From contig OZ249451.1 of NCBI GenBank assembly GCA_965235115.1, positions 1,798,001 through 1,862,000 of the forward strand: a DNA stretch of 64,000 nt. The letters are read 5' to 3'. This document shows positions 1 to 64,000 of this stretch, piece by piece; within the stretch, counting starts at the first letter, position 1; each line of letters starts with the position of its first letter. The position numbers and the translations under genes were made by a program. The notes under the pieces were generated by a model. That model worked only from the letters and a program-made list of their open reading frames with translations. It did no database searches and was not told where the DNA came from. This stretch comes from Laetmonice hystrix. Lineage: Eukaryota.

Positions 1-3000
1 GCCAACCAGGAAGCCCGGGAGGAAGAGGTGAAGCAGGACCAAGAGGCGAAGCAGGACCACGTGGAGAGGCTGGCAGTCCAGGTGGAGCTGGGCCTGCAGG
101 ACCCGCTGGATCACCAGGCCAGCGTGGTGAGGCAGGACCTCAAGGAGCCCCAGGAAGTGCAGGGCAACCAGGCTCACAGGGACCGAGAGGAGAGTCAGGC
201 CCTGCTGGACCTGGAGGTGCGAGAGGTGAACCAGGCCAGAGAGGAGAAGCAGGGACACCTGGATCTGCAGGTCGACCTGGAGAGAGAGGACAGGCTGGAT
301 CACCTGGACCTGCAGGACAGGCTGGTTCACCCGGAACCCGAGGAGAGGCAGGCCCACGAGGTGAGCAAGGACCACGTGGGGAGGCAGGAACACCTGGATC
401 CCAAGGAACGCCTGGCCAAAGGGGAGAGGCAGGACCTGCAGGACAATCTGGTCCTGCAGGACCATCTGGCGCTCCTGGGCCAAGGGGAGAAGCAGGTGCT
501 CCTGGAGCACCTGGCCGTGGAGAACAAGGTCCACGTGGAGAAGCTGGAACACCTGGTACTCCAGGTAGACAGGGCGAAAGAGGAGCCGCCGGACCTGCTG
601 GTCCATCAGGACCACAAGGACCACAAGGTGGACGTGGTGAACCTGGTCAGCGAGGAGAAGCTGGACCAAGGGGAGAAGCAGGATCACCTGGTGGTGCTGG
701 TAAGTTGAAATGAATATTCTCCACGCTTTTTATGATTTTCTTTACTCGTAATTCGATTAAAATAAACGATACTTCTAAATTCTGTATAATTTTTTTATTT
801 TATTTATGACCACCATTTCTTGATGAAAAGTCATATAAATAATGTGGCATGAATGTGTAGGTCCGGCCGGCCCTCAGGGTCCACAAGGACAACGAGGAAC
901 ACCGGGCACTGACGGACAGCCAGGCTCAGATGGTCAGCCAGGATCACCTGGCGCACGAGGTGAACCTGGTGCAGCTGGAACACCAGGCGCCCGTGGAGAG
1001 CCAGGTCAGCGCGGCGAAGCAGGAACTCCAGGACAGGCTGGAAGGCCAGGAGAACGAGGAGAAGCTGGTCCACAGGGTGCAGCTGGTTCAGCAGGCCCAT
1101 CTGGCCCTGCCGGATCCCCTGGACAACGGGGTGAAGCTGGACCACGCGGAGAGCCCGGATCAGCTGGTGCACCTGGTAAGATTTGGAAAATTAACAGTTC
1201 ATGTCTTAGCTGAAAATAATTTAGGGACTCGATTGGTTCTGTTCAGACAATACAAGATTTTGTTTTACTGTCGTGAAGCTTATACATTAAACTTTTGACT
1301 GGGGTTTCCTGTTTCTTGTTTAATGTAAATAATTTTGTGAATGTGTTTCATTTTCAGGTCGCGATGGTCAGCCTGGAGCTGCTGGCCCACGTGGTGAGCC
1401 AGGAACAGATGGACAAGCAGGAAGTAGAGGAGAAGCAGGACCACGAGGTGAGGCAGGACCACAAGGGTCTCCTGGTCAACGTGGTGAAGCCGGTGCACCT
1501 GGATCACCTGGAAGCCGTGGAGAACCAGGCACTCCTGGATCAGATGGCTCCGCTGGACCAGCTGGACCAGCCGGTACTCGTGGAGAACCCGGACAACGTG
1601 GTGAAGCTGGACAACGTGGTGAACCTGGTGAGGCAGGTCGTCCTGGTACTGATGGCCGTCCGGGTGAGCGTGGCGAGGCTGGGCCTGCAGGTTCAGCTGG
1701 TCCAGCTGGACCCCGTGGAGAGGCTGGCCCAGCTGGAGCGCGAGGAGAGCCTGGTCAAGCAGGCGAAGCTGGATCTCCTGGACGAGATGGTAAGAAGCAG
1801 TCTTGTTTTCAATTTTACTTAATTGGAAGAATCATTATATTTCCTACTGATACGATTAAACCCTTTGCTGATCATAACAAATATTGCTTGAAAAGGATCA
1901 CCTGGAGCGCAAGGCCCCGCAGGACCACGAGGAGAACCTGGACTTGCTGGGCCCGCTGGTGCTGTAGGACCATCTGGACCTCGTGGCGAAGCTGGCACAG
2001 CTGGCAGAGATGGATCACCTGGTCAACGGGGTGAACGCGGTCAACGTGGTGAAGCTGGGCAGCCTGGATCTGCAGGACGACCAGGTGAGAGAGGTGAGGC
2101 TGGACCGGCCGGAGCAGCAGGAGAGCCTGGAAGAGCTGGTTCTCAAGGACCACAAGGAGCACGTGGTGAGCCAGGTCAGCGTGGAGAGGCTGGTGAACGT
2201 GGACAGGCAGGATCACCAGGATCACCAGGTAAGGGCTTCTAATTTGATTATTAACTTTTAGGAATTAAAGAAAATTTCATAGGTATACTTCAATGATTGC
2301 TAATCAATTATTCCTCTTCATAACTCACTTAACATTGCAATTACAGGTACCGCTGGTTCTCCTGGATCTCAGGGAGCCCGAGGTGAAACAGGATCGCAAG
2401 GACCACAGGGAGCACGAGGTGAAGGAGGAGCACGTGGTGAAGCTGGAACTCCAGGATCCCCAGGGCAGCGTGGTGAGCGAGGTGAACCAGGTGCTGCGGG
2501 ATCACCTGGAACAGCTGGCCGACCAGGAGCACGTGGAGAGCAAGGATCTCAAGGACTACAGGGAGAACGTGGCGAAGCTGGAACACCTGGCTCTGATGGC
2601 AGACCAGGAGAGAGAGGTCAACCAGGTGAACCTGGCCGAGCTGGTTCCCCAGGAGCAAGAGGTGAACCAGGCACGGACGGTCGCCCAGGTGAGCGTGGAG
2701 AACAAGGACAACGAGGAGAAGCCGGAGCACCTGGTTCACCTGGAAGGGCTGGAGAACGAGGGCAAGCAGGACCTGCTGGCCCCCAGGGAGCAAGAGGAGA
2801 GGCTGGCCCGCAAGGAGGCAGAGGTGAAGCCGGGCAAGCGGGATCAGCAGGTGAACGTGGCGAACCAGGAACAGATGGTCGACCAGGTACGTCATGGTTG
2901 AAATATTATTATCATTATTGGAGAGAGTGAGATACACGGGCCGATAATGACAGGTCCTGGGATGGGGATGAAACTTAAGGGGATTATCCAGATCTAAACT

Positions 3001-6000
3001 CCTTAAGATAAATAAAATTATTTTATTTTGTATGATACGCCTACCGCTTACCAGTTCAAATGGTTACTTTAAAATGCCTGTTCGAAATGATTTACTAATA
3101 CTTTTTAAATTTGTATTAATCAGGCTCCGCTGGAGCTCCTGGTCAACGTGGTGAACGTGGTGAGGCCGGACCAGCTGGCCAACCAGGATCAGCCGGACCA
3201 TCAGGACCTCAGGGCCAGAGAGGAGAGTCAGGAGCACCTGGCACCGCTGGTCAACGTGGAGAGGCAGGACAGCGTGGCGAGCCTGGTTCTGCTGGTTCAC
3301 CTGGCAGGCCCGGCGAAAGAGGACAGCCTGGCTCTGCTGGCCCAGCTGGACCACAGGGACCACAAGGATCAAGAGGAGAACGTGGTGAGGCAGGACCAAG
3401 AGGAGAGCAAGGCGCACGTGGAGAAGCAGGCACGCCAGGATCTGCAGGGACACCAGGATCAGCTGGCCCTGCTGGATCTCCAGGCCAACAGGGACAACGT
3501 GGAGAACGCGGAGAAGCTGGAGCAGCAGGAACCCCTGGACAACGCGGAGAGGCCGGTCAAAGAGGAGAGGCTGGAGCCCCTGGGTCCGCAGGAAGTCCAG
3601 GACAGAGAGGTGAAGCTGGTGCACCAGGATCCCAAGGACAACGCGGAGAAGCTGGTCCACAAGGTGGCCGTGGTGAAGCTGGACAGAGAGGTGAAGCTGG
3701 AACTCCAGGAAGAGCGGGTGAGCGTGGTGAGCCTGGAACACCAGGCCGCGATGGATCAGCTGGAAGGCCAGGGCCCCCAGGACCTGCCGGATCCCAAGGA
3801 CCTGCTGGAAGTCGGGGAGAACCAGGCACACCAGGTTCACAGGGAGCACGAGGAGAGAGGGGAGAACGTGGAGAACCTGGCACTGCTGGACGTCCTGGAG
3901 AACGTGGACAGGCCGGATCTCCTGGTTCACAGGGATCGCAGGGTCAACAAGGCGCTCGAGGAGAGCCTGGTACCCGTGGTCAATCTGGCGAACGGGGAGA
4001 GCCTGGAACTGCTGGATCACCAGGTAAGTTGCCCTATTTTCAAATCTTTTGCGGATCACATCATTTATGTTTATAAGTGTATAAATCTGAATGGATATTT
4101 CAGTATGTAATACTAAAATATATATTTTTCCTTATAGGATCTGCTGGACCTGCTGGACCACAGGGACCAAGAGGTGAAGTTGGTCCTCAAGGACCAGTAG
4201 GAGCTTCAGGAGCCAGAGGAGAACCAGGAGCAGCAGGATCACCAGGACGACCTGCAGAAAGGGGTGCACAAGGAGAACAAGGAGCAGCAGGCCCTGCTGG
4301 ACCAGCTGGAGCTCCAGGTCAAGCTGGAACCCCTGGACAACGTGGCGAACCCGGCACAGCTGGAAGTCCTGGTTCTCCTGGACCTCAAGGTCAACGTGGA
4401 GAACGTGGTCCTGATGGGCAGGCAGGAAGTGCAGGAACACCAGGTTCACAAGGTCAACGTGGTGAGAGAGGTGAAGCAGGTCCACAAGGTGCTAGAGGAG
4501 AGGCTGGAACTGCTGGAACACCTGGTAGCCGCGGCGAACCTGGTAAATATGCTATAAAATTTGTTGTTCTATAAAGTTTTAAGTAACAGGAGAAAATAAG
4601 AAAATCTAAGTGCATTGTGCCATAACAGTATACATACACTGTGTTTCAGTAAAAGCCTTTTGGAAAAATAGTTTGGATCTGCACCGCCTTACACTGTTGA
4701 TGAAACTGTAATATGTTTCTTTCAGGAACACCTGGATCACCTGGTCCTCAGGGAAGTCGAGGACTCCCAGGTAGCGCTGGACAGGCTGGAGCAGCTGGTC
4801 CTGCTGGAGAGCGGGGACAGCGTGGAGAACCAGGAGCGAGAGGAGAAGCCGGTGAAAGAGGTGGGCAAGGTGAGCGTGGTCAAGCAGGAACCCCTGGGTC
4901 CCCCGGACAGCAAGGACAACGAGGTGAGGCCGGGCCCCAGGGAGCTCGAGGCGAGGCAGGGCAGGCTGGATCTCCAGGAACTGCTGGAGCACCAGGAACA
5001 CGAGGTGAACGTGGTGAACCAGGAACACGTGGACAGGCTGGTACGCCTGGATCCCCTGGTCAACGTGGTGAACGAGGAGAAGCTGGACCACAAGGCTCTG
5101 CTGGAACACCTGGGTCTCAAGGACAACGTGGTGAAACGGGCGGTCGTGGAGAGGCTGGACCTCGTGGAGCACCAGGCCAACGAGGAGAACCAGGTTATTA
5201 TACTAATTGCAATTCATACCAGACATATGATTTTACGTTACGCTTAGAAAAGCAAAATGCCACTGAAACCTATTAACTAGACTTTGCACCCGAGTATTCT
5301 ATTTTCTTATTATCTAATACACAACGTTATGAACACATTAGTTTAGTGTGTGTTGCCCTCTTGCAAATCCATATAGTTAATATGGAGCGAAAGACCAGAT
5401 ATAGTATTTGTTATTTTCTGCAAATTCAAGGTACCGCTGGTACTCCTGGATCACCTGGACAGCGTGGTGAGCCTGGCTCAGCTGGAGCAGCAGGACCCGC
5501 TGGCCCATCTGGACCACAAGGACAAAGAGGCGAGGCTGGTACAGCTGGACAACGTGGCGAGCAGGGCGCAAGAGGTGAGGCTGGTGCACCTGGATCTGAC
5601 GGTCGCCCAGGAGAGAGAGGTGAGGCAGGTTCCCCAGGTAGCCCAGGACAACAGGGATCACCAGGTTCACAAGGTCAACGAGGAGAGGCCGGCCAAAGAG
5701 GAGAGGCTGGTCCAGCAGGTGAACCCGGAACACCAGGAACAGCAGGCAGACAAGGAGAGAGAGGTCTTCCTGGTCAACCAGGAACAGATGGACAACCAGG
5801 TGCTCGTGGTGAAGCTGGACCAGCTGGACCACAAGGTCAGAGAGGTGAACCTGGTACCCGTGGTGAGGCAGGCGCTCCTGGTACCCCAGGACGTGCTGGA
5901 GAACGTGGCCAACCAGGATCTGCAGGATCTCAAGGATCGCAGGGACGCCGAGGTGAACAGGGTGGACGTGGTGAGCAAGGAGCCCGTGGAGAACCAGGTT

Positions 6001-9000
6001 CTGCTGGATCACCAGGTACGTACTACTCATTTCAATTTGCCACCAAGTTTGGTAAATGAAAGAAAGGTGTCTGCTCAATATTTTTCTTCCCATTTTATGA
6101 AAATCATCAAGAGCACTTAAAATGTCATTTTCAATGTAGGTTCACCTGGCGAGGCTGGTCCACAGGGACCTCAAGGTGCTGCAGGCAGACCAGGACCAGC
6201 TGGATCAGCTGGACAAGATGGACAACGAGGTGAACGAGGCGAGGCTGGAGCACCAGGTACGCCTGGATCTCAGGGTCAACCAGGAGCTCGTGGCCAGGAT
6301 GGTGAAGCCGGACAACCAGGACGTCAAGGAGAACGTGGAGAACCAGGCCCTGCTGGACAAGCAGGTTCTGCAGGAAGTCCAGGACAGCGAGGCGAACCCG
6401 GTCAGCGTGGCCAGCGTGGCGAACGCGGAGAGGCGGGATCCCCAGGATCTGCAGGACAACAAGGTTCAAGGGGTGAACCCGGATCACCGGGATCCGCTGG
6501 TCCACAAGGAGCACGGGGTGAGGCTGGAGAAAGAGGTGCCGATGGTTCTCCAGGAACCCCAGGTCAACGAGGAGAAGCTGGAACCCCTGGAACAGCAGGT
6601 AGACAAGGTGAAAGAGGTTTACCTGGAACCGCTGGTCAGCCTGGCTCACCTGGTCAACGTGGTGAACCAGGTACCCCTGGAGGCCAAGGTGAACGTGGTG
6701 AAGCCGGCCCAGCAGGACCCCAAGGATCAAGAGGAGAAGCAGGTAAGAAAATATTTTTAGTAGTTGGACTCAGATTTTCTGTTCTTTGACACTTGATTAT
6801 CAATATTAATGTTAATTGAAATACACATTCAAATATATTGTTTTAATTGTGAAATACAGGCGCTGATGGAAGCCCAGGATCTCCTGGACAACGCGGTGAG
6901 CGTGGAGAGCCTGGCCAGGCAGGAACACCTGGATCAGCAGGACAAAGGGGAGCGCGAGGAGAGGCTGGAGCCCGTGGAGAACCAGGTGCCCGTGGCGAGC
7001 CAGGAACGCCGGGATCGCAGGGATCACCAGGCTCACCAGGTCCCGCAGGTCAAAGAGGAGAGGCTGGCCCTGCAGGCAGTGCAGGTCAGGCTGGACCCGC
7101 CGGACCACAAGGACCTCAAGGACAGCGTGGTGAACAAGGAGCACGTGGAGAGGCAGGTGAGGCTGGCCGTGCTGGAGAAAGAGGCCAGCCAGGGTCTCCA
7201 GGACAAGCAGGATCCCAGGGTGCTAGAGGTGAACGTGGAGAACAGGGAGCAAGAGGAGAGGCTGGAACTCCTGGTTCCCCAGGACAGCGGGGAGAACCAG
7301 GCACACCAGGATCTGCAGGTAAATGGCAGCTAATATTTGAATTTTTATTATATATCCCAAATTTAAGATTTTGTCATCAGCATCTTCATTATCAATAACA
7401 ACATTAATACTACTATTCTTTTAATATTTTCATGATGATTTTATTCTATCTTCTATCTATCGAATCTATGTTACATTCCCTATAATTATCAGGATATCCA
7501 TCGCTATCCTTCCTTCTTTTAGCAGTACTGATGCCATTTTTACTTAATTAATTTACATTAAATTCTACTGCCTAATAGGCCAAGCTGGTCAAGCTGGTCC
7601 ACAAGGGCCACGGGGTGAGCGTGGAGAAGCAGGGCAGCCAGGATCCGCAGGAGAAGCAGGGCAGCCTGGATCCAGAGGAGAAGCAGGACCCGCAGGACCC
7701 CAGGGTGGCCGTGGAGAGGCAGGTGCTAGAGGCCAAGCTGGCGCCCCAGGATCCCCAGGCCAGCGAGGAGAGAGAGGCGAACCAGGCACGGCCGGATCAG
7801 CTGGACCTCAAGGGCCACAAGGTTCCCGTGGAGAAGCAGGACAGCGAGGTGAACAAGGCGCTCGTGGAGAAGCAGGGACACCAGGATCACAGGGTGGCCC
7901 AGGTCAACCAGGACCTGCTGGACCAGCAGGTGCCCCTGGCCAAAGAGGTGAGCGGGGAGAGGCTGGCTCTGCGGGAACTCCTGGACAACGTGGCGAACCA
8001 GGACAGCGTGGTGAGGCAGGAACACCAGGATCACAAGGTCAACGTGGTGAACCAGGCCAAGATGGATCAGCAGGGGCACCAGGACAGGCTGGTGCTCAGG
8101 GTCCTCGTGGAGAAAGAGGAGAGCAAGGAGGCCCGGGAGCAGCTGGAACGCCAGGAGGACGAGGAGAACCAGGAGCTCGTGGTGAACCAGGAACGGCTGG
8201 CTCACCAGGCCGACCAGGTTCACAAGGTGCAAGAGGTGAGCCAGGACAGCGTGGAGAACAAGGACAACGAGGAGAAGCTGGTAGCCCAGGACAAGCAGGT
8301 ATGTTGTTGATATTAAAATGATACTTGGAGAAATACCAGAGTGAACTTAATGTGGATGACATTTCCCATAGCAAGCTATTCTTCAATTCGTCTTACTACA
8401 TTGAAACATTTACTGTCACAACCAAATTAAAACCAACTATAATCACGTCTAATCAGATTGATCTTTCAACATCATTACATGACAGATCGTTATGATTCTC
8501 ATTGACTCACAGGGTCGGCTGGACAGCCTGGCGGACAAGGACAACGTGGTGAACGGGGAGAAGCCGGACCAAGTGGGGCACCTGGATCACCTGGGCAACA
8601 AGGTTCTCGTGGAGAGCCAGGCGCGGCTGGAACCCCTGGCCAGCGTGGTGAACAAGGCGCACGAGGAGAAGCAGGTACAGCAGGCTCCGCTGGACAAAGA
8701 GGAGAACGAGGTGAAGCAGGCGCCCCAGGATCAGCTGGACAGGCTGGTCCTCAGGGACCGCGAGGAGAGCGTGGCGAAGCTGGCACTCCAGGTTCACGAG
8801 GTGAAGCCGGATCTCCGGGTGAAGCGGGCAGACAGGGTGAACGTGGTGCACCAGGTTCAGATGGTCAACCTGGAGCAGCAGGACCTCAGGTATGTATGGC
8901 AAATTTCTGAAGGAAAAGGAAACACAGGACAGAAATACTTTACAAGTATTCGATACCCCAGTGGTAAAAAAAAACTATGCAATGCTCTATCTTTGTCTTT

Positions 9001-12000
9001 CTTTTGTTGTATTGTAATAATTTATTTAGTATCAAATTGTATTCAATAAATGTCGAAAATAGTTTATAAAGTATTAAACAGGGAATAATACAACACAATG
9101 CTTCTCTTATTAAGGGACAACGTGGAGAACGTGGAGAACCAGGTTCTGCTGGAGCTAGAGGAGAGGCTGGTGCACCAGGTACTCCTGGTGAACGTGGCCA
9201 AGCTGGAACACCTGGGTCACCTGGACAAGCTGGACCACAGGGACAACGAGGAGAAGCAGGTCCAGGTGGCCAGCGAGGAGAGCGAGGAGAGGCTGGTTCA
9301 GCTGGAACACCAGGATCTCGTGGAGAACCCGGTATTTATCTCGTACTTTTATATATTACAAGATAAAGACTCTATATAAACAGTAAAATAGTCAACTTGG
9401 TTTAAGGAGTAGAAATAGCTAAACCACTCAAACAGTCAGCTTTGCCAGCTCACGGTTATTTCATATGATTTATTTTTTAACGATACAACTTTTAACCTAG
9501 TATTGTCTCTGCTTCCCTAGGATCTCCTGGACCAGCAGGTCCACAAGGTGCCCGAGGAGAAGCTGGACCCCAAGGACCAGCAGGGGCCAGAGGCGAAGCT
9601 GGACCTGCAGGACAGTCTGGTTCAGATGGCCGTCCAGGCTCCCCTGGTCAGCGTGGAGAACAAGGCCCACGTGGTGAAGCTGGTGCTGATGGAACACCAG
9701 GCCAGCGTGGAGAACGTGGAGAACCAGGTACAGCTGGGCAAGCGGGATCACCAGGTTCACAAGGACAACGAGGAGAGAGAGGCGAAGCAGGACCACAGGG
9801 ATCTCGTGGTGAGCCAGGAACCCCTGGAAGTGCAGGAGGACGTGGAGAACGTGGAGAACAAGGAGCTCCTGGATCAGCAGGGTCACCTGGACCACAAGGA
9901 CAAGCTGGATCACCTGGTCAACGTGGTGAACCAGGACAACGAGGTGAGCCTGGTCAGGCGGGACCACAAGGTCCTAGAGGTGAGGCAGGAGAGGCCGGTT
10001 CTCCAGGAACGCCTGGGTCACAAGGAGCCAGAGGTGAAGCTGGACAACGAGGAGCAGCTGGACAACGTGGAGAGCAAGGACAGCGTGGTGAGGCAGGACA
10101 ACCTGGATCGGCTGGCCCTGCTGGACCTGCTGGACCACAAGGCCAGAGAGGTGAGGCAGGAGCGGCGGGTCAGGCAGGTGCTGCAGGACAACCTGGACAA
10201 CAGGGCGCCCGAGGCGAGGCTGGTGCTGCTGGAACACCTGGACAACGTGGAGAAGCTGGACAACGTGGGGAGGCTGGTACCCCAGGCACGCCTGGTAGAC
10301 AGGGAGAGCGAGGAGAAGCAGGACCAGCAGGACCTGCAGGACAAGCTGGATCGCCAGGTCAGCGAGGAGAACAAGGTGCACGAGGAGAACAAGGAGCAAG
10401 AGGAGAGTCTGGCTCACCTGGAACGCCTGGTCAAAGAGGTGAACCAGGAACACCAGGAACTCCAGGTTCCCAAGGACAACGAGGAGAACAGGGTGAAGCG
10501 GGTCGACGTGGTGAACCAGGACAGAGAGGAGAAGACGGCTCCCCAGGTGCACCTGGATCTCGTGGAGAACCAGGTAACGTATTATAACCAATATTAAACA
10601 TATATGCTTTATTGTAAAGTAAATTGGCTACTTACGTATATACAATTTCAGAACCTGCCAATTTCAAATTGGATTTTAATATTGTGAACAGGTAGCCAAG
10701 GCGGCCCAGGATCACCAGGACAGAGAGGAGAAGCTGGTCCACAAGGAGCACCAGGTGAATCTGGTCCTGCTGGACCTGCAGGACAGCGTGGTGAACAAGG
10801 CGCCAGAGGAGAGCCTGGAGCAGATGGCCAAGCCGGACAACGTGGTGAAGCAGGTACACCTGGTACAGCTGGAAGGCCGGGAGAAAGAGGTCAAGCAGGA
10901 GCTGCAGGAGGCCCTGGACCACAAGGCCCACGTGGTGAACGTGGAGAAGGAGGAACTCCCGGACAGAGAGGGCAACCAGGTGAACGAGGAGAACCAGGTA
11001 CCGCAGGACAGGCTGGCCGACAGGGAGAAAGAGGTGAAGCTGGTGCCCCTGGTTCAGCTGGACAAGCAGGGTCCCCAGGCCAACGTGGACAACGTGGGGA
11101 GGCTGGAACCCCAGGAAGTCAAGGACAACGTGGAGAAGCTGGACCTAGAGGGGAGCCAGGAACCCCTGGCTCTCAGGGTGCACGCGGAGAACCTGGAACC
11201 CAAGGACAAGCTGGTGGCCCAGGCCCACAAGGACAACGTGGCGAGGCAGGAGCTCGTGGTGAAGCTGGACAGCCTGGTAGTCAGGGAGCCCGAGGTGAAG
11301 CTGGTTCTCCCGGACAAGCAGGACAAAGAGGCGAACCAGGACCTGCTGGGCCACAGGGTCCACAGGGTACCCAAGGACAACGTGGTGAGGCAGGCCAACG
11401 TGGTGAGGCTGGACAACCAGGAAGTCAGGGAGCTCGCGGAGAACCAGGAGAGGCAGGACGTGCAGGTGACGTATATTTTAGCGTACTCACCTGGGTCCAA
11501 ACGTTGTGTTTCTTCAGAATGATGAGCAGAACGTTTTAAAATTATATGAATTTAGTAACGCTTAATTTCATAATGACACATGCTTATATTATTATATCCG
11601 TTTATCAGGTACACCTGGTAGTGCCGGACCTCAAGGTCAGCGAGGAGAGGCAGGTCAACGAGGACAAGATGGATCAGCTGGCAGGCCAGGATCCCCAGGA
11701 CAACGCGGAGAACAAGGCCAACGTGGAGAACCTGGTCAGGATGGATCTGCAGGAAGTCCGGGAGCGCCGGGACAACGGGGAGAACCTGGCGCACAAGGAT
11801 CCCAAGGAGCGCCCGGTGCTGCAGGTCCGCAAGGACAACGTGGCGAACAAGGAGCCCGCGGTGAATCTGGGCAGCCTGGTAGTGCAGGACAGCGAGGAGA
11901 GGCAGGAGCACCTGGTCAGCGTGGAGAGCGTGGTGAGGCTGGCAGCCCTGGTGGACCTGGTCAGGCAGGACAACAGGGAGCACGAGGCGAACCAGGTGAA

Positions 12001-15000
12001 CAAGGCCAACGAGGTGAAGCTGGAGCTCCAGGATCTCAAGGTCAAAGAGGAGAACAAGGTAAGGTGTCACCCTCTCAAGGAATCAGGAGGTCACATATAT
12101 AAAACGATTATAAATACCACTAAAAAACAACCCTCATTGGAAAAAGTGTCAATGTAATACAATATTATATTATATTTTAACTTTTATAGGATCACCGGGT
12201 ACACCTGGATCTGCTGGTCAACGAGGAGAAGCAGGACCTCAAGGTGCCCGAGGTGAACCAGGAACAGCTGGTAGCCCTGGACAGCGTGGAGAACAAGGCC
12301 AACGTGGAGAGGCTGGACAGCGCGGCACAGCAGGCGAGCGAGGACAGCCTGGTTCACCTGGTCAGAGAGGCCAGAGAGGTGAGGCCGGCCAACCAGGACC
12401 AGCTGGACCTGATGGACAACCTGGATCACCTGGTACACGTGGAGAACGTGGAGAACGTGGAGAAGCAGGCCAGCGTGGAGAAGCTGGATCTGCTGGAGCA
12501 CCAGGATCCGCAGGACCACAGGGACCACAGGGAAGTCGCGGAGAAGCAGGGCCACAAGGACAACGTGGAGAACAGGGTGCAAGGTTTGTATTTCACTTTA
12601 TTACTATTATTATATAATTTCATTATTTTATAATCCACATAAAAGCATGCACACCGGTCTTGACGTTATGGAAATTGTGTTGAACAGCCGTTCATTTATT
12701 TCATTTCTAAAACAGAGGCGAGGCTGGCTCAGCTGGCACTCCAGGATCAAGAGGAGAGCCTGGCGCCCCGGGATCAAGTGGTCAACGTGGAGAGGCAGGA
12801 CCGCAAGGCGCACCTGGAACCCCTGGCAGTCAGGGACAACAGGGACAGCGTGGAGAACAAGGTGCCCGTGGTGAGGCTGGTGAACGTGGTCAGGCAGGTC
12901 AGCCTGGCTCACCTGGACAACGGGGACAACGTGGTGAGGCTGGTCCGCAAGGTCCATCTGGATCCGCTGGTACACCAGGACAGAGAGGAGAGCGTGGAGA
13001 AGGAGGACAACGGGGCGAACCAGGATCTCCAGGTTTGTGTTGATTGTAATGTCAAGTTAATTTACGAATGAACATGGTGAGAAAACGTTTTAGCTTATGA
13101 ATGATGCCATCGGTATTGGCATTCCATGACACTTGGAATTTATCTTATTTTTATAATCTAGGGTCTGCTGGACAACCTGGATCACCTGGCCAACGTGGTG
13201 AACGAGGTGAACCAGGTCAAGCTGGTGCAGCAGGACAGCCAGGGCCACAAGGAGCTCGAGGCGAAGCTGGGCAAGCAGGAGAGGCCGGACCACGCGGTGA
13301 AGCTGGACAACGTGGTGAGGCTGGAACACCTGGTAGTCAAGGACAGCGGGGTGAACAAGGCGCACAAGGCCAGCCTGGAACACCTGGTAGTCAAGGACAG
13401 CGGGGTGAGCGAGGTGAAGCTGGAACGGCTGGAACGCCTGGCCAACGTGGAGAACAAGGAGCACGAGGTGAACCTGGCCGGGATGGATCACCTGGGTCCC
13501 CTGGATCCCGAGGTGAACCTGGATCAGCCGGATCACCAGGCAGTCAAGGCTCACCGGGTCCCCGAGGCGAACCTGGTCAACGTGGTGAACCAGGCCAGGC
13601 AGGCGAACCTGGATCCCCTGGATCTCAAGGAGAGAGGGGTGAAAGAGGCCCACAAGGAGGAAGAGGACTGCCAGGTTCACAAGGACAACGAGGCGAACAA
13701 GGCGGAGCAGGAACCCAAGGAGCTAGAGGAGAGCAAGGAGCTAGAGGAGAAGCTGGACAGCCTGGATCCGCAGGTAAGTGTACATGGAAATTCACATTTT
13801 GAGGTATAATATGATATTTTGCTTCAGCACAATATTTTTATTGAATGGAATTAAAACAATACATCTGTTTTCAGGACAACGAGGCGCACAAGGGCCACAA
13901 GGACAGCGTGGCGAGGCAGGCACACAAGGCAGTCCTGGTCAAGCTGGTTCACCAGGACCTCAGGGACAACGTGGTGAAGCCGGTCAGCGTGGTGCGGATG
14001 GACGACCTGGAGCACCAGGGCAACGTGGAGAACCAGGAACACCTGGATCCCAAGGCCAACGTGGTGAACGGGGAGAAGCTGGGCAGGCAGGTACATCCGG
14101 ACAACCCGGACCTCAGGGACCACAGGGACAACGTGGTGAACAGGGAGCACGTGGTGAGGCTGGTCAGTCCGGAGAGCCTGGACAGCCTGGACCTCAGGGA
14201 CCACGTGGAGAGTCCGGTCTTGCTGGACCAGCTGGACAACCAGGATCACCTGGACAAGCTGGAGAAGCTGGCACACCTGGGCAGAGAGGAGAACAAGGTC
14301 AACAAGGCGCCCAAGGACAACGGGGTGAAGCAGGTTCTGCTGGAGCGAGAGGAGAGGCTGGACCACAAGGACCTCGTGGTGAGGCTGGACAGGCTGGTAC
14401 ACCAGGACAGAGAGGAGAACAAGGTGCCCGTGGAGAACAAGGTGCTCGTGGAGAGTCTGGTGAACCCGGAAGACAAGGTACGGACATTATCTCCCATATT
14501 GTAGCTCCCCGTTATCCCTAATTATCTTAAGAATAAGGCGCGGGATTTCTGGGTTGTATTTCGAAAAGCATTAAAAAAATTTGAAGGATCAATTTCCTTA
14601 GACATCTGTTACACTTATGTTCCTCTTGAAATATATTGAATTAAGCACTAAAGTTTTTATGTTAAGGTGGATATCTGAAGAGAACAACAGCTAATTTTAC
14701 CGGGTTTTCTTGTGAGCAGGATCAGCTGGCAGTCCCGGATCGCCTGGGCAGCGTGGAGAGGCGGGATCCCCAGGATCACAGGGTAGCAGAGGAGAACCTG
14801 GACAACGTGGAGAGGCTGGACCGGCAGGCTCCCCTGGACAACGTGGCGAGAGAGGACAGGACGGACAACCTGGCTCGGCTGGACCACAGGGACCACAAGG
14901 GCCACGTGGTGAACCTGGAGCCCAGGGATCCGCTGGTCAACGTGGTGAACCTGGACTTGCTGGTTCTCCTGGTCAGCGTGGTGAGCGTGGTGAAGCTGGG

Positions 15001-18000
15001 TCTGCAGGTCTAAGTGGACCTGCTGGACCTGCAGGACAACGTGGACAACCAGGATCAAGAGGAGAGCCAGGACAGCGCGGTGAACCTGGAAGCCCAGGTT
15101 CTCAGGGAGAGCGTGGACAAGCAGGGTCACCTGGTCTGCAGGGTAGACGAGGTGAGGCTGGACAACAGGGCCGTCAAGGAGAACGTGGACTACCAGGAGA
15201 GCAAGGACAACGTGGTGAAGGTGGACAGCGAGGCGAGATTGGGCCTGGAGGACCTCCAGGTATGCATTTTTCTTATTAATTTCTTATTTATGCAGTTTGC
15301 ACTGTAGAAAATTGCCACAAAAATAGAAAAGTGAAACCTAAAATCTGACAAAACAACGACCTAGTTTGCTCAATATGCCTGTGTGCTAATTAACATGTAT
15401 TTTTTATTTAGTTCTTGACATTTCTTTTCTACTATTAAATGGCAAGATTCTAGCGGATGTTTGGCCTATACTAATCCTATAATTCCTTGGATGCAGGTTC
15501 CGCCGGACAAGCTGGACCACCAGGACAACGTGGCGAAGCCGGGCCAAGTGGACAACCTGGCCCAGCAGGACAACCAGGACCTCAAGGCTCACGAGGTGAA
15601 TCCGGACAGCGTGGAGAACAAGGATCGCGAGGAGAAGCTGGACCACAAGGACCTCCCGGAGAACAAGGTTCACAGGGAACACTTGGAGAACCAGGACCTC
15701 CGGGACAAAGTGGAGGTATTGGTCAACCGGGACCTGCCGGTCCAAGAGGAGAAGGCGGACCACCAGGTCAACGTGGTGAAGCTGGCCCACCTGGGCAACG
15801 TGGAGAAGGTGGAAGACCAGGTCCGTCCGGACCGCCTGGTCAACGTGGAGAGGCTGGACCGGCTGGACCTTCGGGAGCTATAGGTGAAAGTGGTCCACAG
15901 GGTACCCGTGGAGAGCCTGGACCTGCAGGCCAGCGTGGAGAAGCAGGTGAAAGAGGACAACCAGGTTTAGGTGGACCTCTTGGACAACCTGGACCTGCCG
16001 GTCCACTAGGTCCAAGCGGCCCTCGAGGAGAGGCTGGGTTACCTGGCGAAGCGGGACCAGCTGGACCAGCAGGACAAAGAGGACAGCCTGGCCCACCTGG
16101 GCCTAGCGGACCTCAGGGAGAACGAGGGTCAGGTGGACCACCAGGACCATCTGGACCACTTGGACCCCCTGGACCTAGTGGTCCACGCGGTGAGGTCGGA
16201 GGACCTGGCCAATCAGGTCCACCTGGCGGCACTGGACTTCCAGGCCCACAAGGACAACGTGGTGAGCAAGGTCAACGAGGAGAAGCTGGACCACCTGGAC
16301 CGAGAGGGCAACCTGGACCTGGTGGACCACTCGGCCCGGCAGGACCTAGAGGTGAGCGTGGAGAAGGCGGGCCTCTTGGGCCTAGTGGACCACCCGGAGA
16401 ATCTGGTCCATCAGGGCCAGCTGGCGAAAGAGGTCCATCTGGACAGTCAGGTCAGCCTGGACGACCGGGTCCACCAGGACCACTTGGACCAGCAGGACCG
16501 GCAGGACCTCAAGGTGAGCGCGGACCACCTGGGTCACAGGGACCGAGAGGAGAAGGTGGCGAGCGTGGACCTGCTGGCGAACGAGGTGGACCTGGTCTCC
16601 GAGGATCCAGTGGAGAACGTGGAGGTGCTGGACCACCTGGGCCACAAGGACGTGCAGGTGAGTCCCATTCTGTGTAAATAACGCTATTTGAAACAACATT
16701 ATGATATATTTTATTCTATTCAATCGTTTAACCAATCTTTACTTTTGTTTTCAAAAGGCGAACGTGGACAACTTGGCAGTCCTGGTGCGACCGGCCAGAG
16801 AGGTCCACCTGGAGAATCTGGAAATGCTGGACCAAGAGGAGAGAGAGGTCCAGCTGGTCCCTCCGGACAGAACGGTTTGGGTGGACCTCCTGGTGGTCCT
16901 GGTGAGCCTGGACCTCAAGGACAGCGTGGAGAACGTGGAGAACGTGGATCACAGGGAGAACAAGGACGTCCAGGTCAGTTCTTCTAGTCTAGTCACAAAA
17001 ATAAATAAATCTACTTTTTGTTTTCTTTATATTCTTTAGATTTCACTAAAGAAATCTGAGTACAACAAAGCACAACAAAAATACTGACACCATGGTGTAA
17101 AAAAAATCCAGGTGAGCAAGGCCAGGCTGGACCACTTGGTCCCAATGGAAGACCGGGATCAACGGGATCGACTGGACCACGGGGACCTCCGGGACCAGAG
17201 GGCCGAGCCGGCCCCTCTGGCCCACGTGGACAGGTTGGATCACAAGGAACTAGAGGAGAACAAGGTACAAGAGGAGAACAAGGAGGGCGAGGACAGCCTG
17301 GACGGCCAGGAGAGAGAGGAAGCCCAGGTAAGCAACATTCCAGATTATGTCACAGTGTTTACCAAGAAAACTCCAGACCTACGTGTTATCAACTGAGGAT
17401 TTATAAGATTATGTCACAGTGTTTACCAAGAAAACTCCAGACCTACGTGTTATCAACTGAGGATTTATAAGATTATGTCACAGTGTTTACCAAGAAAACT
17501 CCAGACCTACGTGTTATCAACTGGGGATTTATAAGATTATGTCACAGTGTTTACCAAGAAAACTCCAGACCTACGTGTTATCAACTGAGGATTTATAAGA
17601 TTATGTCACAGTGTTTACCAAGAAAACTCCAGACCTACGTGTTATCAACTGAGGATTTATAAGGTGTCATTCTGATACCCCTGAAGCTATTTCATTATTT
17701 TCTTTTATTGTATACAGGAGCAACTGGATCTACGGGCTCAGAAGGAGCAACTGGGCCATCGGGTCCACAAGGCCGCAGAGGAGGACCTGGCCCACGTGGT
17801 CCTAACGGTCTCACTGGATCTAATGGCAGACCTGGCTTTACTGGAGCCACTGGAGTCAGAGGTTCGTTAGTTTAATAATTGTACACACACCATGCATTTA
17901 GTATAGGAACGAGCATACATTGAATTCCGCGCGTGAAAGACATGCACGTTAAAAACGATCTCTCATGCCCAATATCCGTGTTTACCTGCAGGACCGAGAG

Positions 18001-19345
18001 GCGGAGATGGAAATGCGGGACCACGTGGACCGACGGGAGCCACGGGACCGACAGGCCGCATGGGTAGGACCGGCGCCACTGGACCGGTTGGTCGTGACGG
18101 CCGCACTGGTGTCCGTGGTCCGACGGGAGTCATTGGCCCACGTGGTGCACGTGGACAGGCTGGTCTTGGTGCTCTTGGTAAGTCATCTATTTACCATTCT
18201 GTCTCTTGGATCTAACGAACTTCACTCAGAGGGGAGATGTCACAATTACATGATAGCAAGGTTTCCGCCAGAGGGTAAAATGGGTAAAATTCCGTACCCT
18301 AAAATTTTTCCAGGGTACGGATCCGTACCCTCAAAATCGTTGGTTAACCATTTTTCCATGAAGTGATAAAAAACATCCCCATGATGCCTTGATCAACTTG
18401 AAGGAATCAAATATAATGTTGTACAGTATAATGCAGTCTTTATTTGATTAATTCAGATACACCCCTCCTCTGGTCCGTACCCTAAATTTTTTTCTGGCGG
18501 AAACCCTGGACAGTCTAACTTGTCAACGGCAGTGGTGGTGGGGGGGGGGGGGGAAATGCCCTGAGATTTATTTTTTAATTCTGGTTGCGCTTCTGGTTCA
18601 TGGCTAATTAGGTCATCTGGCCAAATAAGAACCCGTTCTTTTTACGTCATGGGTTATTTAATTTTTAATTATACTCGCAAATATATTTCCCCAAAAAAAT
18701 GATTTTAAAAATTAATATTTGCCCTTTTTACAACGAATCTTTCGTCCTCTTTTTCTAGCTCTTGGACAGAAGATGGCGAAGGGAGAACAAGACGTTATGC
18801 GAGAGCAGAACATCTTGAAGAAGATGTCCGCTAAATCCAACACGTTCGCCGTGGGAATGGCAGCGTGGGCTGGTATCGTCACAATCGCCCTCATAGTCAT
18901 CGTGGCGATCGTCTACAGAAGAATCAAGTCGAATCGCCCAGGATCGTCGGCCGAGTCCGTGTATTCCGACGCAGAGTCAGGTTCCAACTCAGGTTCCTCC
19001 TTTGCCTACGACCGTTCCAGCGTTGTTGACATTGCGTCCAGTTGCGGGGATGGGGAGACGAACGACGGCTTCACAGAGGACCTACCTACAGCTCCGGTAG
19101 CCATGCCGGCCGAGGTCCGACAATTGGACAGCGAACTGAACGAGAAAACACTACGACACATTGCCGGACTCCACGAGGAGGGTGACGAGGACGACGACGA
19201 CGCCGCGTCTGTCGCCGACGTGCACGGTCAAGGTCAAAACAAGGGCGACGCCAACCACCTGACGACGTCCCGTCATCAGTTCCGCCATGCGCCTTTCAAA
19301 GGACTGCACGTGAACGAGAACCCAGGAGGGTCATCCTTCCTCTAA
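1..19345 (+). CDS. Gene A: giant membrane-anchored (type I) collagen, 5'-partial; 28 exons, about 4,770 aa in window, about 1,520 Gly-X-Y triplets + neck + TM + 142-aa cytoplasmic tail
   Basis: Hand-derived exons: <1-699, 861-1175, 1358-1789, 1896-2228, 2347-2886, 3124-4023, 4138-4542, 4726-5193, 5431-6015, 6140-6742, 6860-7318, 7579-8298, 8513-8889, 9115-9331, 9521-10573, 10692-11465, 11609-12058, 12190-12583, 12716-13032, 13162-13773, 13875-14477, 14720-15259, 15497-16657, 16758-16973, 17112-17327, 17718-17861, 17992-18177, 18759-19345 (TAA). All introns are GT-AG. 25 of 27 are phase 1 (all but the last split a Gly codon). Internal collagen exons are multiples of 9 nt, singly or as pairs around the phase-0/2 introns. 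The spliced frame is a Gly-X-Y repeat ([15 protein letters not shown]). Confidence 0.93.
17342..17661. repeat. Intronic minisatellite, 5 x 64 bp
   Basis: Unit agattatgtcacagtgtttaccaagaaaactccagacctacgtgttatcaactgaggatttata starts at 17342, 17406, 17470, 17534 and 17598. Copies are near identical. Confidence 0.95.
18257..18508. mobile_element. MITE-like element in the last intron of gene A
   Basis: 15-bp terminal inverted repeats caaggtttccgccag / ctggcggaaaccctg (14/15 match) and repeated internal ccgtaccct motifs in both orientations. No target-site duplication found. Confidence 0.55.
18759..19345 (+). CDS. Gene A terminal non-collagenous exon: neck, transmembrane helix, cytoplasmic tail ending ...GGSSFL
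   Basis: Acceptor ttttctag|CT at 18758/18759 joins in phase 1 to the exon ending ...GQAGLGAL-G|gtaagt (18177). It reads [58 protein letters not shown]..., the same frame as ORF 18719..19345. Confidence 0.9.
18845..18916 (+). other. Predicted transmembrane helix of collagen A ([24 protein letters not shown])
   Basis: 24 uncharged, mostly aliphatic residues followed directly by RRIK (positive-inside rule gives a cytoplasmic C-terminus). Confidence 0.88.
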
Positions 19346-21135
19346 AAGCCACAAGGTGGCGCCTTCGACGCACAGCGCATGCGTACTTTCTTTCGACTCT
19401 TAACCGTTAAAATGTTTGGATGGATGAATGGTATTTTTACAAGCTAATGAGGGGGCAAAAGGAGGTAGTTTCATACAGAACATTAACTCGGACTGCATAT
19501 CACTGAACTCCACTCAGCTGAAACATAGTCGTACCGTGACTGCCGCTCAGTTTATTAACCCTTGAACTGTGTTAATCTGGTGTTAGAATCTGCCACAGAA
19601 GTCAGGCTTTGATTGAAATACTCTCTCGGGCCACATTCATCCTTAGTCTTGTGTCCACTGCTGGTGAAATGAATGTTACCTGGCTGTAAGATGCATCTAT
19701 AGAAGGCTATAAATCGCTCAAATTCATTAGAAATAGAATTTGGCAAGTTGGGGCGGGAGCGTCGAGAGATTGTCACACTCTAAACAAAATCATTTCCGCA
19801 TTTATAATGCATCAGAAGTTAAAGGAAACATATATTATGCAATATTATCGAATTGTGCTTTGTTAACCTACGCAGTGTATATGTATTGGCTATAAGATGG
19901 TAAATAACTTATTGAGGTTTCTACACGGTGTCGGCCTACCGTTGGCGCACCTTGAACCCAGTATGCTGTAAGCAGCCCCCCAGTGCTCTAGTGAAGGGCT
20001 TGAGTCGCTCTACTGTCTCCAAGCCAAGCGTAGGCCAAATGGTTAAATCGTAACAATACCCGCGCCCACACCACTATCAGTAATATAGAACGCTTGGATC
20101 ATTACGTTAACCAACCTATAGATGAATCCAGAGGCTAAGTCTCAATTAGAGATTATTGAATTTAGTTAGTCCGTTTGAGTTTGGTGTCTGTTTGTACGCT
20201 CACTTAATCGACAGCCTCTATTTTGTGTCATGGAACTCTGGAAAATTTCTAGAGGGCTCCATATCAGCGTGTGTGTGGGTGTGTGTGTTTGTGTGTGTGG
20301 GTGGGCTTTCTCGGCGGCGAGACCAGCATTTGACATCGAGGTGCTGGAATTCATGCTAAACTTCCTAACTGGCATACATACTGACCCGTAAAGTATATGG
20401 TTTAGTACAAGCTGTTTAAATCCGGTGAGTGTTTTTTGTAGAACGGATATGCAGCCTTTTGTTCATACTATTGTAAGTACATTATCTCACTCAAGTCTTT
20501 CAGATGTTAGGGCGAACCATAAACTTAATAACCCGCAGATTTCCCATGCCATTGTGACGGGAACGTTAACCTAGGATATCACTATGATTCCCCAAGGACT
20601 TATTGTAAGCGCCAACTGCCATTCCGTTATAATATGCTCACCCGGCTGCAGTCTGTGATACATTGGTCGCGCATGCGTACAAATCTACTCTTACACACCT
20701 AAAAATGCCGAACCAGCAATCAACGGAGGTTTGGCTCCCGCCCAACGAGACCTACTGAGTGGTTATGTAACATTTGCATGCTTGGTAGAACGAGTCGGAG
20801 TTTTGTGTACGATTACGTAGCCGCGCGCGTGGAAGAAAAGCAATATTCAGTGGGATTCGGCCTTTAAGACCAGTGCAATCCAAATACACATGTGCAACCT
20901 GTAATTGGGTTTCAATAATCCATCCTTTAATTTCATGAAATTCATCCAGGCGTCCAGGCAATAATCAGAATGCTGACAGAGAGCGTTTATGTGTTTAATA
21001 CAAGCGCACCGTTATGGTAATATGCAGCCGTTATTAACAATGTCACGGTACTTCCATATATATGTATGTATAGGGGCATCATGCTTTCGTCAACGTTAAC
21101 CGAAATAATCGCCTCGAGTAATGAAAATAAAACAT

Positions 21136-21497
21136 ATTTTGTATAACAATTACTGGCTATATGTTGTTTATTGATAATAATCAATCAATCAATGATAATA
21201 ATCAATCAATCAATGATAATAATCAATCAATCAATGATAATAATCAATCAATCAATGATATGTCAGCGAAAAGCACACGGACACAGATAAATGCATACTG
21301 ATGACACATTGAGGCTACACAAACACATAGATTCTATACATACAAACATATATTGTATAACAATTACTGGCTATATGTTGTTTATTGATAATAATCAATG
21401 ATATGTCAGCGAAAAGCACACCGACACAGATAATGCATATTGATGACACATTGAGGCTACACAAACACATAGATTCTATACATACAAACATATATTA
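21136..21497. repeat. Tandem duplication of about 145 bp; the first copy carries a 21-bp (aatcaatcaatcaatgataat) x4 expansion
   Basis: ataacaattactggctatatgttgtttattgata...gatatgtcagcgaaaagcaca...gaggctacacaaacacatagattctatacatacaaac occurs twice. Confidence 0.8.
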
Positions 21498-23017: not shown

Positions 23018-23553
23018 CGGCGGCTGTCCGTATTCCCGATACTCGCTCTGAGTCAGGCCGCCCGTATTCCCGATACTCGCTCTGAGTCAGGTGTTCAAGT
23101 CAACGTGCGGCGGCCGCCCGTATTCCCGATACTCGCTCTGAGTCAGGCCGCCCGTATTCCCGATACTCGCTCTGAGTCAGGCCGCCCGTATTCCCGATAC
23201 TCGCTCTGAGTCAGGCCGCCCGTATTCCCGATACTCGCTCTGAGTCAGGCCGCCCGTATTCCCGATACTCGCTCTGAGTCAGGCCGCCCGTATTCCCGAT
23301 ACTCGCTCTGAGTCAGGCCGCCCGTATTCCCGATACTCGCTCTGAGTCAGGCCGCCCGTATTCCCGATACTCGCTCTGAGTCAGGCCGCCCGTATTCCCG
23401 ATACTCGCCCTGAGTCAGGCGTTCAAGTCAACGTGCGGCGGCCGCCCGTATTCCCGATACTCGCCCTGAGTCAGGCCGCCCGTATTCCCGATACTAGCTC
23501 TAAGTCAGGTGTTCAGGTCAACGTGCATGCGGCGGCCGCCCGTATTCCCGATA
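23018..23553. repeat. Intergenic minisatellite, about 14 x 34 bp, with a recurring 21-23 bp insert
   Basis: Unit ggccgcccgtattcccgatactcgctctgagtca. A gtgttcaagtcaacgtgcggc-like insert recurs at about 23091, 23420 and 23508. Confidence 0.92.
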
Positions 23554-25790: not shown

Positions 25791-63948
<38,158 letters not shown>

Positions 63949-64000
63949 CTGTCATCATAAAACTGCCATTTCAGGTTCAAGTCATCATAATATTATACAA

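Follow-up and report, generated by a model that had tools for sequence, protein, structure and literature searches.

The question raised by this locus is how exceptionally long collagen chains are brought together when their helix ends at a membrane segment and no globular C-terminal domain follows. The window, meaning the whole stretch of DNA that was analysed, comprises 64,000 nucleotides of Laetmonice hystrix (assembly GCA_965235115.1, contig OZ249451.1, positions 1,798,001 to 1,862,000 of the forward strand) and holds two neighbouring collagen genes arranged tail to tail, chain A on the (+) strand and chain B on the (-) strand. In both, the last Gly-X-Y exon is followed by a phase-1 intron and by a terminal exon for a short neck, a transmembrane (TM) helix and a predicted cytoplasmic tail. 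It is regarded as very likely that these exons encode a genuine type I neck-TM-tail end which is both expressed and conserved. That neck and TM helix together form a trimerisation and registration module is favoured by a modest balance of the evidence, and that the same module also selects A against B is a tentative proposal. Residues of the terminal exons are numbered from the Leu after the split codon (W36 in A, W38 in B); if the split-codon residue is counted as 1, the conserved Trp becomes residue 37 or 39, exactly as given by an earlier interpretation made from the letters of the window, called here the sequence-only reading.

Direct splice evidence is available for chain A. Four sequencing runs from one sample contain this DNA; three behave as genomic DNA, and the fourth (X4, 59 Mb of contigs) skips introns and is hence treated as RNA-like, although the run record itself does not say RNA. 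The last Gly-X-Y exon of A (17992..18177, +) ends with ...GQAGLGAL and the opening base of an Ala codon that the intron splits in phase 1, and its donor GT lies at 18178 (GTAAGT). It is covered by an X4 contig (record 25) with GT..AG joints on both sides. The last intron (18178..18758, +) is 581 nt long, phase 1 and GT..AG, and the X4 joint 18176|18758 skips 581 nt (cut +1). This joint is one of three consecutive joints in a 2,206-nt X4 contig (17324|17715, 17859|17990 and 18176|18758), each GT..AG. The terminal exon starts at 18759 after AG, where the split codon g|ct encodes an Ala ahead of LGQKMAK.... In the X4 contigs the neck-TM exon thus follows immediately on the last helix exon of A, and the transcript continues through the stop codon (19343-19345) to the poly(A) signal. 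Further X4 contigs over the 3' end lie at 19106-19959, 20013-20260 and 20642-20860, and depth is zero after about 21136, just past the AATAAA at about 21126-21131. The 3' untranslated region (19346..21145, +) is accordingly about 1.8 kb long. No other X4 joint leaves 18176 or the terminal exon, in one sample and in contigs from which minor isoforms may be hidden. The sequence-only reading had named as a refutation that transcripts are dominated by another downstream exon with a globular trimerisation domain; no such exon is seen in the X4 transcripts of A.

The last intron of A contains a very high-copy dispersed repeat at about 18182-18575, where contig depth in the DNA runs is 25,000-75,000 (about 65 in the flanks), and also, at 18538-18555, a G18 run at which DNA contigs break or differ. 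An A/G polymorphism at window position 19075 is present in both the DNA run X2 and the RNA-like X4. It falls on the third position of a Thr codon (ACA to ACG), is synonymous, and probably explains the break between the X4 contigs at 19044 and 19106.

The 3' end of chain B has the same layout, its last splice being read from the sequence. The last Gly-X-Y exon (26696..26746, -) ends with ...GARGASAL and the opening base of a Gly codon, again split in phase 1, with its donor at 26695-26694. The last intron (26144..26695, -; 552 nt, phase 1) leads to a terminal exon that starts at 26143, where the split codon g|gc encodes a Gly ahead of LSDEW.... Both helices therefore end in ...AL at a common phase-1 intron, as the sequence-only reading had said. 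X4 contains all sampled words of 25400-26143, that is, the B terminal exon and 400 nt of 3' flank, so B is expressed too. Between the stop codons of A and B lie 6.4 kb in which only short open reading frames (ORFs) and repeat-derived ORFs were found. A minisatellite of 31 bp x 8.2 is located inside the last intron of B (26286-26539), and another of 34 bp x 9 lies between the two genes (23112-23509).

The neck of A (18759..18844, +) consists of the split-codon Ala and L1-T28. It is charged, contains no Cys and is hydrophobic at positions 1, 5, 12, 19 and 22. The neck of B (26052..26143, -) consists of the split-codon Gly and L1-N30, is likewise Cys-free and charged, and has a heptad-like core of F10, V14, L17 and V28. 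As a part of the cassette the neck is put at 35 residues in A and 37 in B, the latter being longer by two. The TM helix of A (18845..18916, +) runs from F29 to Y52 with the invariant W36 followed by A37, G38 and T41, and carries on the heptad register of the neck. That of B (25980..26051, -) runs from L31 to Y54 with W38, and is supported by Kyte-Doolittle hydropathy and by BLASTP to A. The best 19-residue Kyte-Doolittle means are 2.74 for A and 2.68 for B. The tail of A (18917..19342, +; 142 residues) opens with the basic stop-transfer sequence RRIKSNR and later carries an acidic run, FRHAPFKG and the C-terminal GGSSFL. The tail of B (25794..25979, -) has 62 residues, with KRLKSHS, NDSES, NRSSVVD, NTGF and the end ...DGQT, followed by the stop codon at 25791-25793; the distal motifs of the A tail are missing from it. 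In a BLASTP comparison the two terminal exon products match with E 2e-14 and 35% identity over the TM helix and the first part of the tail, starting about 17 residues before the Trp. This match, together with the family described below, shows that the likeness is no product of chance. Common to both are the TM helix and the cytoplasmic motifs Y[RK]R[IL]KS, D[AS]ES, RSSVVD and N-x-G-F; the sequence-only reading has no mention of the tail or of these motifs. Pfam assigned no domain to either terminal exon and returned sub-threshold noise only (Protocadherin, E 0.064; YxzE, E 0.063).

Most of what the sequence-only reading had described at this level held on inspection. The segments 18759-18916 and 25980-26143 each span exactly the part of the exon from its start up to the Tyr closing the TM helix, the neck sequences it quoted are exact and free of Cys, and the pattern W-x-G-I-x-x-x-A-L-I-V-I is common to both TM helices. 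Its list of neck identities (L2, A7, D12-V13 and AKxxT) was rejected as evidence of homology: it amounts to 4 of 28 positions in a gapless comparison, and AKxxT is offset by -1 where the Trp is offset by +2.

The terminal exon of A belongs to a sequence family. A HMMER scan with it against 1.84 billion representatives gave 39 matches, 37 of them real, with E values down to 9e-81; two (P0006 and P0023) were excluded as repeat-driven false matches. The real matches are short ORFs that correspond to the A terminal exon. Ten family clusters were examined and none carries an informative name (one is called 'hypothetical protein'), and in the protein atlas the A terminal exon had no usable match. 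Gly-X-Y triplets stand in frame ahead of the neck in three of the database ORFs (P0029, P0041 and P0046). An intronless 3.7-kb contig from another organism (L017) has an ORF of 517 residues that runs from Gly-X-Y to ...GLGAVAL and on into neck, Trp-containing TM helix and tail, and is mRNA-type evidence for the order collagen-neck-TM-tail. Two further loci, 31-36% identical to A (L018 and L022), have a phase-1 intron at the same position. In a related species, orthologues of A (72-75% identical) and of B (67%) lie together on one 502-kb contig. The tail of the B orthologue (P0053) ends with ...SGQT, and its neck has an indel N-terminal to the Phe; the length variation of B-type necks lies in general N-terminal to this first core Phe.

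In the family alignment the Trp is present in 36 of 36 members, A37 in 33 and T41 in 33 (Thr, with Ser in three members). W36, A37 and T41 are conserved far beyond the needs of mere hydrophobicity. The helix junction is conserved as G-x-G-[VAF]-[ALM]-A-L, the spacing from L1 to W36 is ungapped in most members, and the neck length is nearly constant. Conservation extends into the tail, where Asp70 of SDAES is kept in at least 33 of 36 members and D70 and S87 at 90% or above, and where SSVVD, N-x-[AG]-[FY], a box of the form LD-T/S-ELN...L, an acidic run and FRHA recur widely. G-[SA]-S-F-[LM] forms the C-terminus of about half of the members in the alignment. This ending of A-type tails looks like a class I PDZ ligand; tails of the B type are short, with ...GQT at the end in both species. 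A and B would therefore give one trimer two kinds of cytoplasmic end.

The neck is predicted to be a helix that runs on into the membrane. AlphaFold2 with the family alignment modelled the A terminal exon as one helix over residues 2-57, with predicted local distance difference test (pLDDT) values of 83-98 (86-92 in the neck and 94-98 in the TM segment) and a tail that is disordered except for a short helix at 128-134. As a predicted structure, a helical stalk that passes into the TM helix without a break is in this sense well supported, and the neck is helix-prone as originally proposed. A coiled coil is moderately supported at the level of the family. The family-mean hydrophobicity of neck positions 1-32 has peaks at 3.5 and 2.3 residues, the harmonics of a heptad, and 42 of 5,000 shuffles reach the 3.5 value. 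Hydrophobic columns occur at 1, 5, 8, 12, (15), 19, 22, 26, 29, 33, 36 (the Trp), 40, 43, 47 and 50, so that the 3-4 spacing begins with the residue that closes the helix junction and continues unbroken into the bilayer. A test of the a/d register on four A-type sequences singly gave p values of 0.01-0.06 each, all in the same register and with L1 and W36 in the core; the B orthologue P0053 gave p 0.003.

Upstream of these ends lie two giant genes. The helix exons of A within the window (9..18177, +) are Gly-X-Y runs, and with the flanks included they span window positions -16796 to 18177; the gene starts about 20 kb upstream of the window. Upstream of the helix, an ORF opens with the signal-peptide-like MSQLFLILVVFTTLFGTVVTQ, and two VWA domains are encoded (Pfam E 9e-17 and 2e-16). 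The helix exons of B within the window (26696..63949, -) belong to a set that runs from 70176 down to 26696, preceded by one VWA domain (L006:6796-7566, -; Pfam E 7.7e-8), and the gene starts at least about 7.5 kb past the window end. The protein atlas gave only generic VWA clusters for the VWA exon. A third minisatellite, a multi-kb array of units of about 40 bp (71727 to past 75000, L006/L014), occupies the intron upstream of the B VWA exon. The helix of A comprises 2,867 triplets and that of B 2,868, or about 8,600 residues with at most one Cys, corresponding to about 2.46 um at 0.286 nm per residue; these counts are Gly-X-Y runs minus the donor triplet of each run and are approximate. The number of Gly-X-Y runs differs (64 in A, 74 in B), and the near-equality of the two lengths is hard to explain unless both chains fold in one molecule; A and B probably share one. 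Helix exons reach about 1.2 kb and are mostly phase 1, with the split Gly codon directly after AG (60 of the 64 A runs and 64 of the 74 B runs). Short in-exon interruptions of Gly-X-Y (2-3 residues) occur in both chains, at 521-528, 4253-4263, 43909-43919, 48517-48524 and 52742-52752. Type I membrane topology is predicted from the signal peptide of A, the N-terminal VWA domains of both chains, the hydrophobic helix near the C-terminus and, by the positive-inside rule, the basic cluster that follows this helix.

The same genome holds further copies of the cassette. A profile search of it gave two more, on contigs C1 (E 4.5e-11) and C11 (E 0.003). The first belongs to a third giant collagen (C1:30240001-30262556) made almost entirely of Gly-X-Thr and followed by EGF-like modules, then by an exon with a Trp-containing TM helix and a tail ending with ...TRL. 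An mRNA-like contig of the same type (L024, P0038) has an ORF of at least 2,955 residues with Thr at Y in 746 of about 830 triplets, and after the Gly-X-Thr part it too has EGF-like modules and then TM helix and tail. The second copy belongs to a fourth collagen (C11:8449872-8453003, L029), in which a Trp-containing TM helix (W-L-I-I-V-T-I-L) stands 24 residues after the last triplet and is followed by an RRRRR stop-transfer sequence and a long tail rich in Ser and Thr. Anchoring at the C-terminus seems to be a recurrent feature of the collagens of this genome, and TM helix plus tail form the conserved core of the cassette.

In comparison with collagens of known assembly, the chains of this locus combine familiar elements in an unfamiliar order. 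The phase-1 exons of up to 1.2 kb and the N-terminal VWA domains set them apart from the fibrillar clade, whose exons are phase 0, of 54 bp or multiples of it, and whose helix has about 1,000 residues against about 8,600 here. They also lack the COLFI domain of fibrillar procollagens, since Pfam found none in the terminal exons and the A transcript ends after the TM-tail exon. The earlier statement that neck and TM helix replace the C-propeptide accordingly stands in so far as no globular C-terminal domain follows the helix, and it applies in a functional sense only. Transmembrane and coiled-coil domains are listed as collagen nucleation centres in a review, which cites Bulleid 1997 for the replacement of the C-propeptide by a TM segment (PMC11304992); the general claim of the sequence-only reading that a TM anchor can substitute for the propeptide is borne out to that extent. 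The engineered TM-procollagens and the present cassette are alike in their C-terminal anchor, which in place of the C-propeptide is compatible with trimer formation and folding of the helix. The present family would be the natural counterpart, conserved and with a heptad neck and tail of its own on a chain of about 9,000 residues. The construct of Bulleid, Dalley and Lees (1997) was reportedly a short procollagen with a foreign TM segment in place of the C-propeptide.

The membrane collagens described in the papers searched are of the opposite topology. In MACITs (XIII, XXIII, XXV and COL-99), collagen XVII and about two-thirds of the cuticle collagens of C. elegans (predicted type II), a single-pass chain has a short coiled coil by the TM helix that aids trimer formation and sets the direction of folding. 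In A and B the topology is predicted to be reversed, with TM helix and cytosolic domain C-terminal. Their helix of about 8,600 residues is almost uninterrupted where MACITs have three short COL domains, and they lack the conserved NC4 Cys motif and the furin site (R-x-x-R) of MACITs while having a long, conserved tail. The juxtamembrane coiled coil of type II membrane collagens helps trimerisation, and MACITs have not been found in annelids or molluscs (PMC4678570). Full-text searches of the literature gave no description of a collagen with a C-terminal TM helix; the membrane collagens found there are all type II and fold from N to C. What appears new is thus a membrane collagen with a juxtamembrane helical stalk, as is known, but with a predicted reversed topology, giant size and a conserved tail. 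Necks of about 30-35 residues soon after the helix are also known from collectins (SP-D) and scavenger receptors, and the collectin neck is a parallel three-stranded coiled coil that nucleates from the C-terminal side. Collectins are secreted and have a lectin domain after the neck, whereas A and B have a TM helix in the same register and no Pfam domain; no sequence relationship was found. By analogy, neck and TM helix may here have the nucleating task that falls to the C-propeptide of fibrillar collagens, to the collectin neck and to a mirror-image juxtamembrane coiled coil in type II chains.

The closest likeness is to annelid cuticle collagen. Annelid cuticle collagens are described with a very long helix and globular domains (PMC11766948), and the Alvinella genome paper gives, under its cuticle heading, collagens of 7,719-8,859 residues in alvinellids and one in an earthworm (PMC12403961). 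The word 'transmembrane' is absent from the latter paper, and a C-terminal TM anchor of giant annelid collagens was not reported in the literature searched. Cuticle collagen of Nereis (A and B), Alvinella and Riftia has a helix of up to about 2.5 um, similar to the 2.46 um estimated here, and its globular end and two different chains have their likeness in the N-terminal VWA domains and the paralogous chains of equal length. Thr at Y is found near the C-terminus of A and B and is dominant at Y in the C1 paralogue, the composition of which recalls the Thr-rich cuticle collagen of Riftia. According to Gaill and colleagues, annelid cuticle collagen is said to be extractable as soluble molecules of about 2.5 um with a globule at one end.

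The explanation that is preferred, by a narrow balance of probability taken as a whole, is that A and B together build a giant two-chain collagen of the kind known from annelid cuticle, with a length of about 2.46 um, which is inserted as a type I membrane protein and has neck plus TM helix as the nucleus of the trimer. From N to C, each chain would consist of VWA domain(s), a helix of about 8,600 residues, neck, TM helix and cytoplasmic tail, preceded in A by a predicted signal peptide. In the terminal-exon cassette a heptad neck would start within four residues of the last Gly-X-Y triplet, and the TM helix would keep its register, with the Trp in the core and A37, G38 and T41 forming a small or polar face, ahead of a disordered tail with linear motifs. 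Three chains would diffuse in the membrane of the endoplasmic reticulum (ER) and associate by a parallel bundle of neck and TM helices; the bundle would align the C-termini and nucleate zippering of the helix from C to N. The tail probably serves another purpose (ER export, apical targeting or a link to the cytoskeleton), and the ectodomain is probably released later. Trimerisation, the direction of folding, co-assembly of A and B, shedding and the identity with annelid cuticle collagen are accordingly put forward as a proposal.

Several observations weigh against this account. The tail is as well conserved as the TM helix, which would be unnecessary for a pure folding nucleus. The a/d register is weak in A itself (p 0.057) and not significant in B (p 0.21); the best period is individually near 3.5 in only 13 of 34 members. 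The neck of B differs in length by two residues from that of A and by one from that of its own orthologue. As to trimerisation of the neck-TM module, a multimer prediction for AAB (residues 1-60 of A twice and 1-62 of B), in which the family alignments were not used, scored 0.09 against a mark of 0.34 and speaks neither for nor against it. The nucleation module proposed by the sequence-only reading is supported in part, by its predicted continuous helix and its family heptads with the Trp in the core. The C1 paralogue and L024 keep TM helix and tail but have several EGF-like modules where the neck would be, and with these between helix and membrane the TM segment cannot register the helix directly. 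A C-terminal nucleus would delay folding until about 9,000 residues had been translated, and the N-terminal VWA region could assemble first. The signal peptide and N-terminal exons of A are ab initio predictions, and the signal-peptide exon of B was not located, a tblastn search of the A N-terminal exons against the region upstream of B giving no match.

Part of this evidence suggests that the cassette is mainly a device for anchoring and trafficking, in which TM helix and tail hold the collagen in the membrane and carry sorting signals (the D-x-E-like SDAES, the acidic cluster and the C-terminal S-F-L/M) for ER export, apical or microvillar delivery and controlled release, with trimers nucleating elsewhere, in the VWA domains, the helix interior or through an accessory factor. 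The family-wide conservation of the tail motifs, with D70 and S87 at 90% or above, agrees with it, as do the EGF-like modules in place of the neck in the C1 paralogue and L024, the C11 collagen, in which 24 residues that form no heptad neck separate the last triplet from the Trp-containing TM helix, and the weak heptads and variable length of the B neck. Because TM helix and tail occur where direct registration of the helix is impossible and the tail motifs are conserved, a membrane or cytosolic role (anchoring, sorting or linkage) is supported, and as a role of the cassette it is at least as well supported as nucleation. The roles of the single motifs, a D-x-E export signal and a PDZ ligand, are speculation from consensus patterns. 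As the whole explanation, anchoring is judged possible but doubtful, for it leaves unexplained the nearly constant neck length, the common heptad register that continues into the TM helix with the Trp in its core, the conserved junction of four residues to the last triplet (G-x-G-x-A-A-L) and the near-invariant polar Thr and small residues within the bilayer. The anchoring and nucleation readings are compatible. In a combined and bolder form, which is considered rather unlikely when taken as a whole, every giant cuticle-type collagen of this lineage (A, B and the Gly-X-Thr/EGF collagen of C1) would be a type I membrane protein with one ancient TM-tail cassette, the A/B bundle would select and register a heterotrimer of two chains of equal length, and the tail would act as a built-in cargo receptor for export and apical delivery.

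Should the collagen never be shed, it would be a permanent tether or receptor that links the apical matrix to the cytoskeleton or signals through its tail, in the manner of syndecans or integrin-type linkers. No conserved furin-type R-x-x-R or other obvious cleavage motif is found in the neck of A, B or the family, and the tail of A is long (142 residues), conserved and PDZ-ligand-like at its end, all of which fits such a function. Sheddases often need no strict motif, though, and the soluble extractability described for annelid cuticle collagen would require release if it is the same collagen; permanent tethering is considered improbable. A glycosylphosphatidylinositol (GPI) anchor was rejected because 62-142 residues follow the TM helix. 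The TM exon could also be an artefact of the gene model, taken from another transcript, a pseudo-exon or a minor isoform, given that the RNA evidence is one sample of assembled contigs from which rare variants are dropped, from a run not recorded as RNA, and that the splice of B was deduced from the genomic letters. A single contig that spans three GT..AG joints into the exon, the same architecture in the intronless contig L017 of another organism, the in-frame Gly-X-Y before the neck in P0029, P0041 and P0046, and the conserved phase and position of the intron make an artefact very improbable.

If the preferred explanation, a neck-plus-TM nucleus on giant cuticle-type chains, is true, a coiled-coil stalk together with an anchor in the membrane can take the place of the C-propeptide in vivo, and do so on the longest collagens known. 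It would also offer a compact module of about 60 residues in which chain choice and register can be tested for a heterotrimer of 3 x 8,600 residues, and the module might serve the production of recombinant collagen. The locus further raises the question of how a rod of 2.5 um leaves the ER, the cargo here having a conserved cytosolic tail of its own; were the tail to act as a cargo receptor, it would represent a solution to the secretion of giant cargo unlike the adaptor-based route of vertebrate procollagen. For the annelids, the cassette would supply the missing primary-structure end of cuticle collagen, a molecule studied biochemically for decades.

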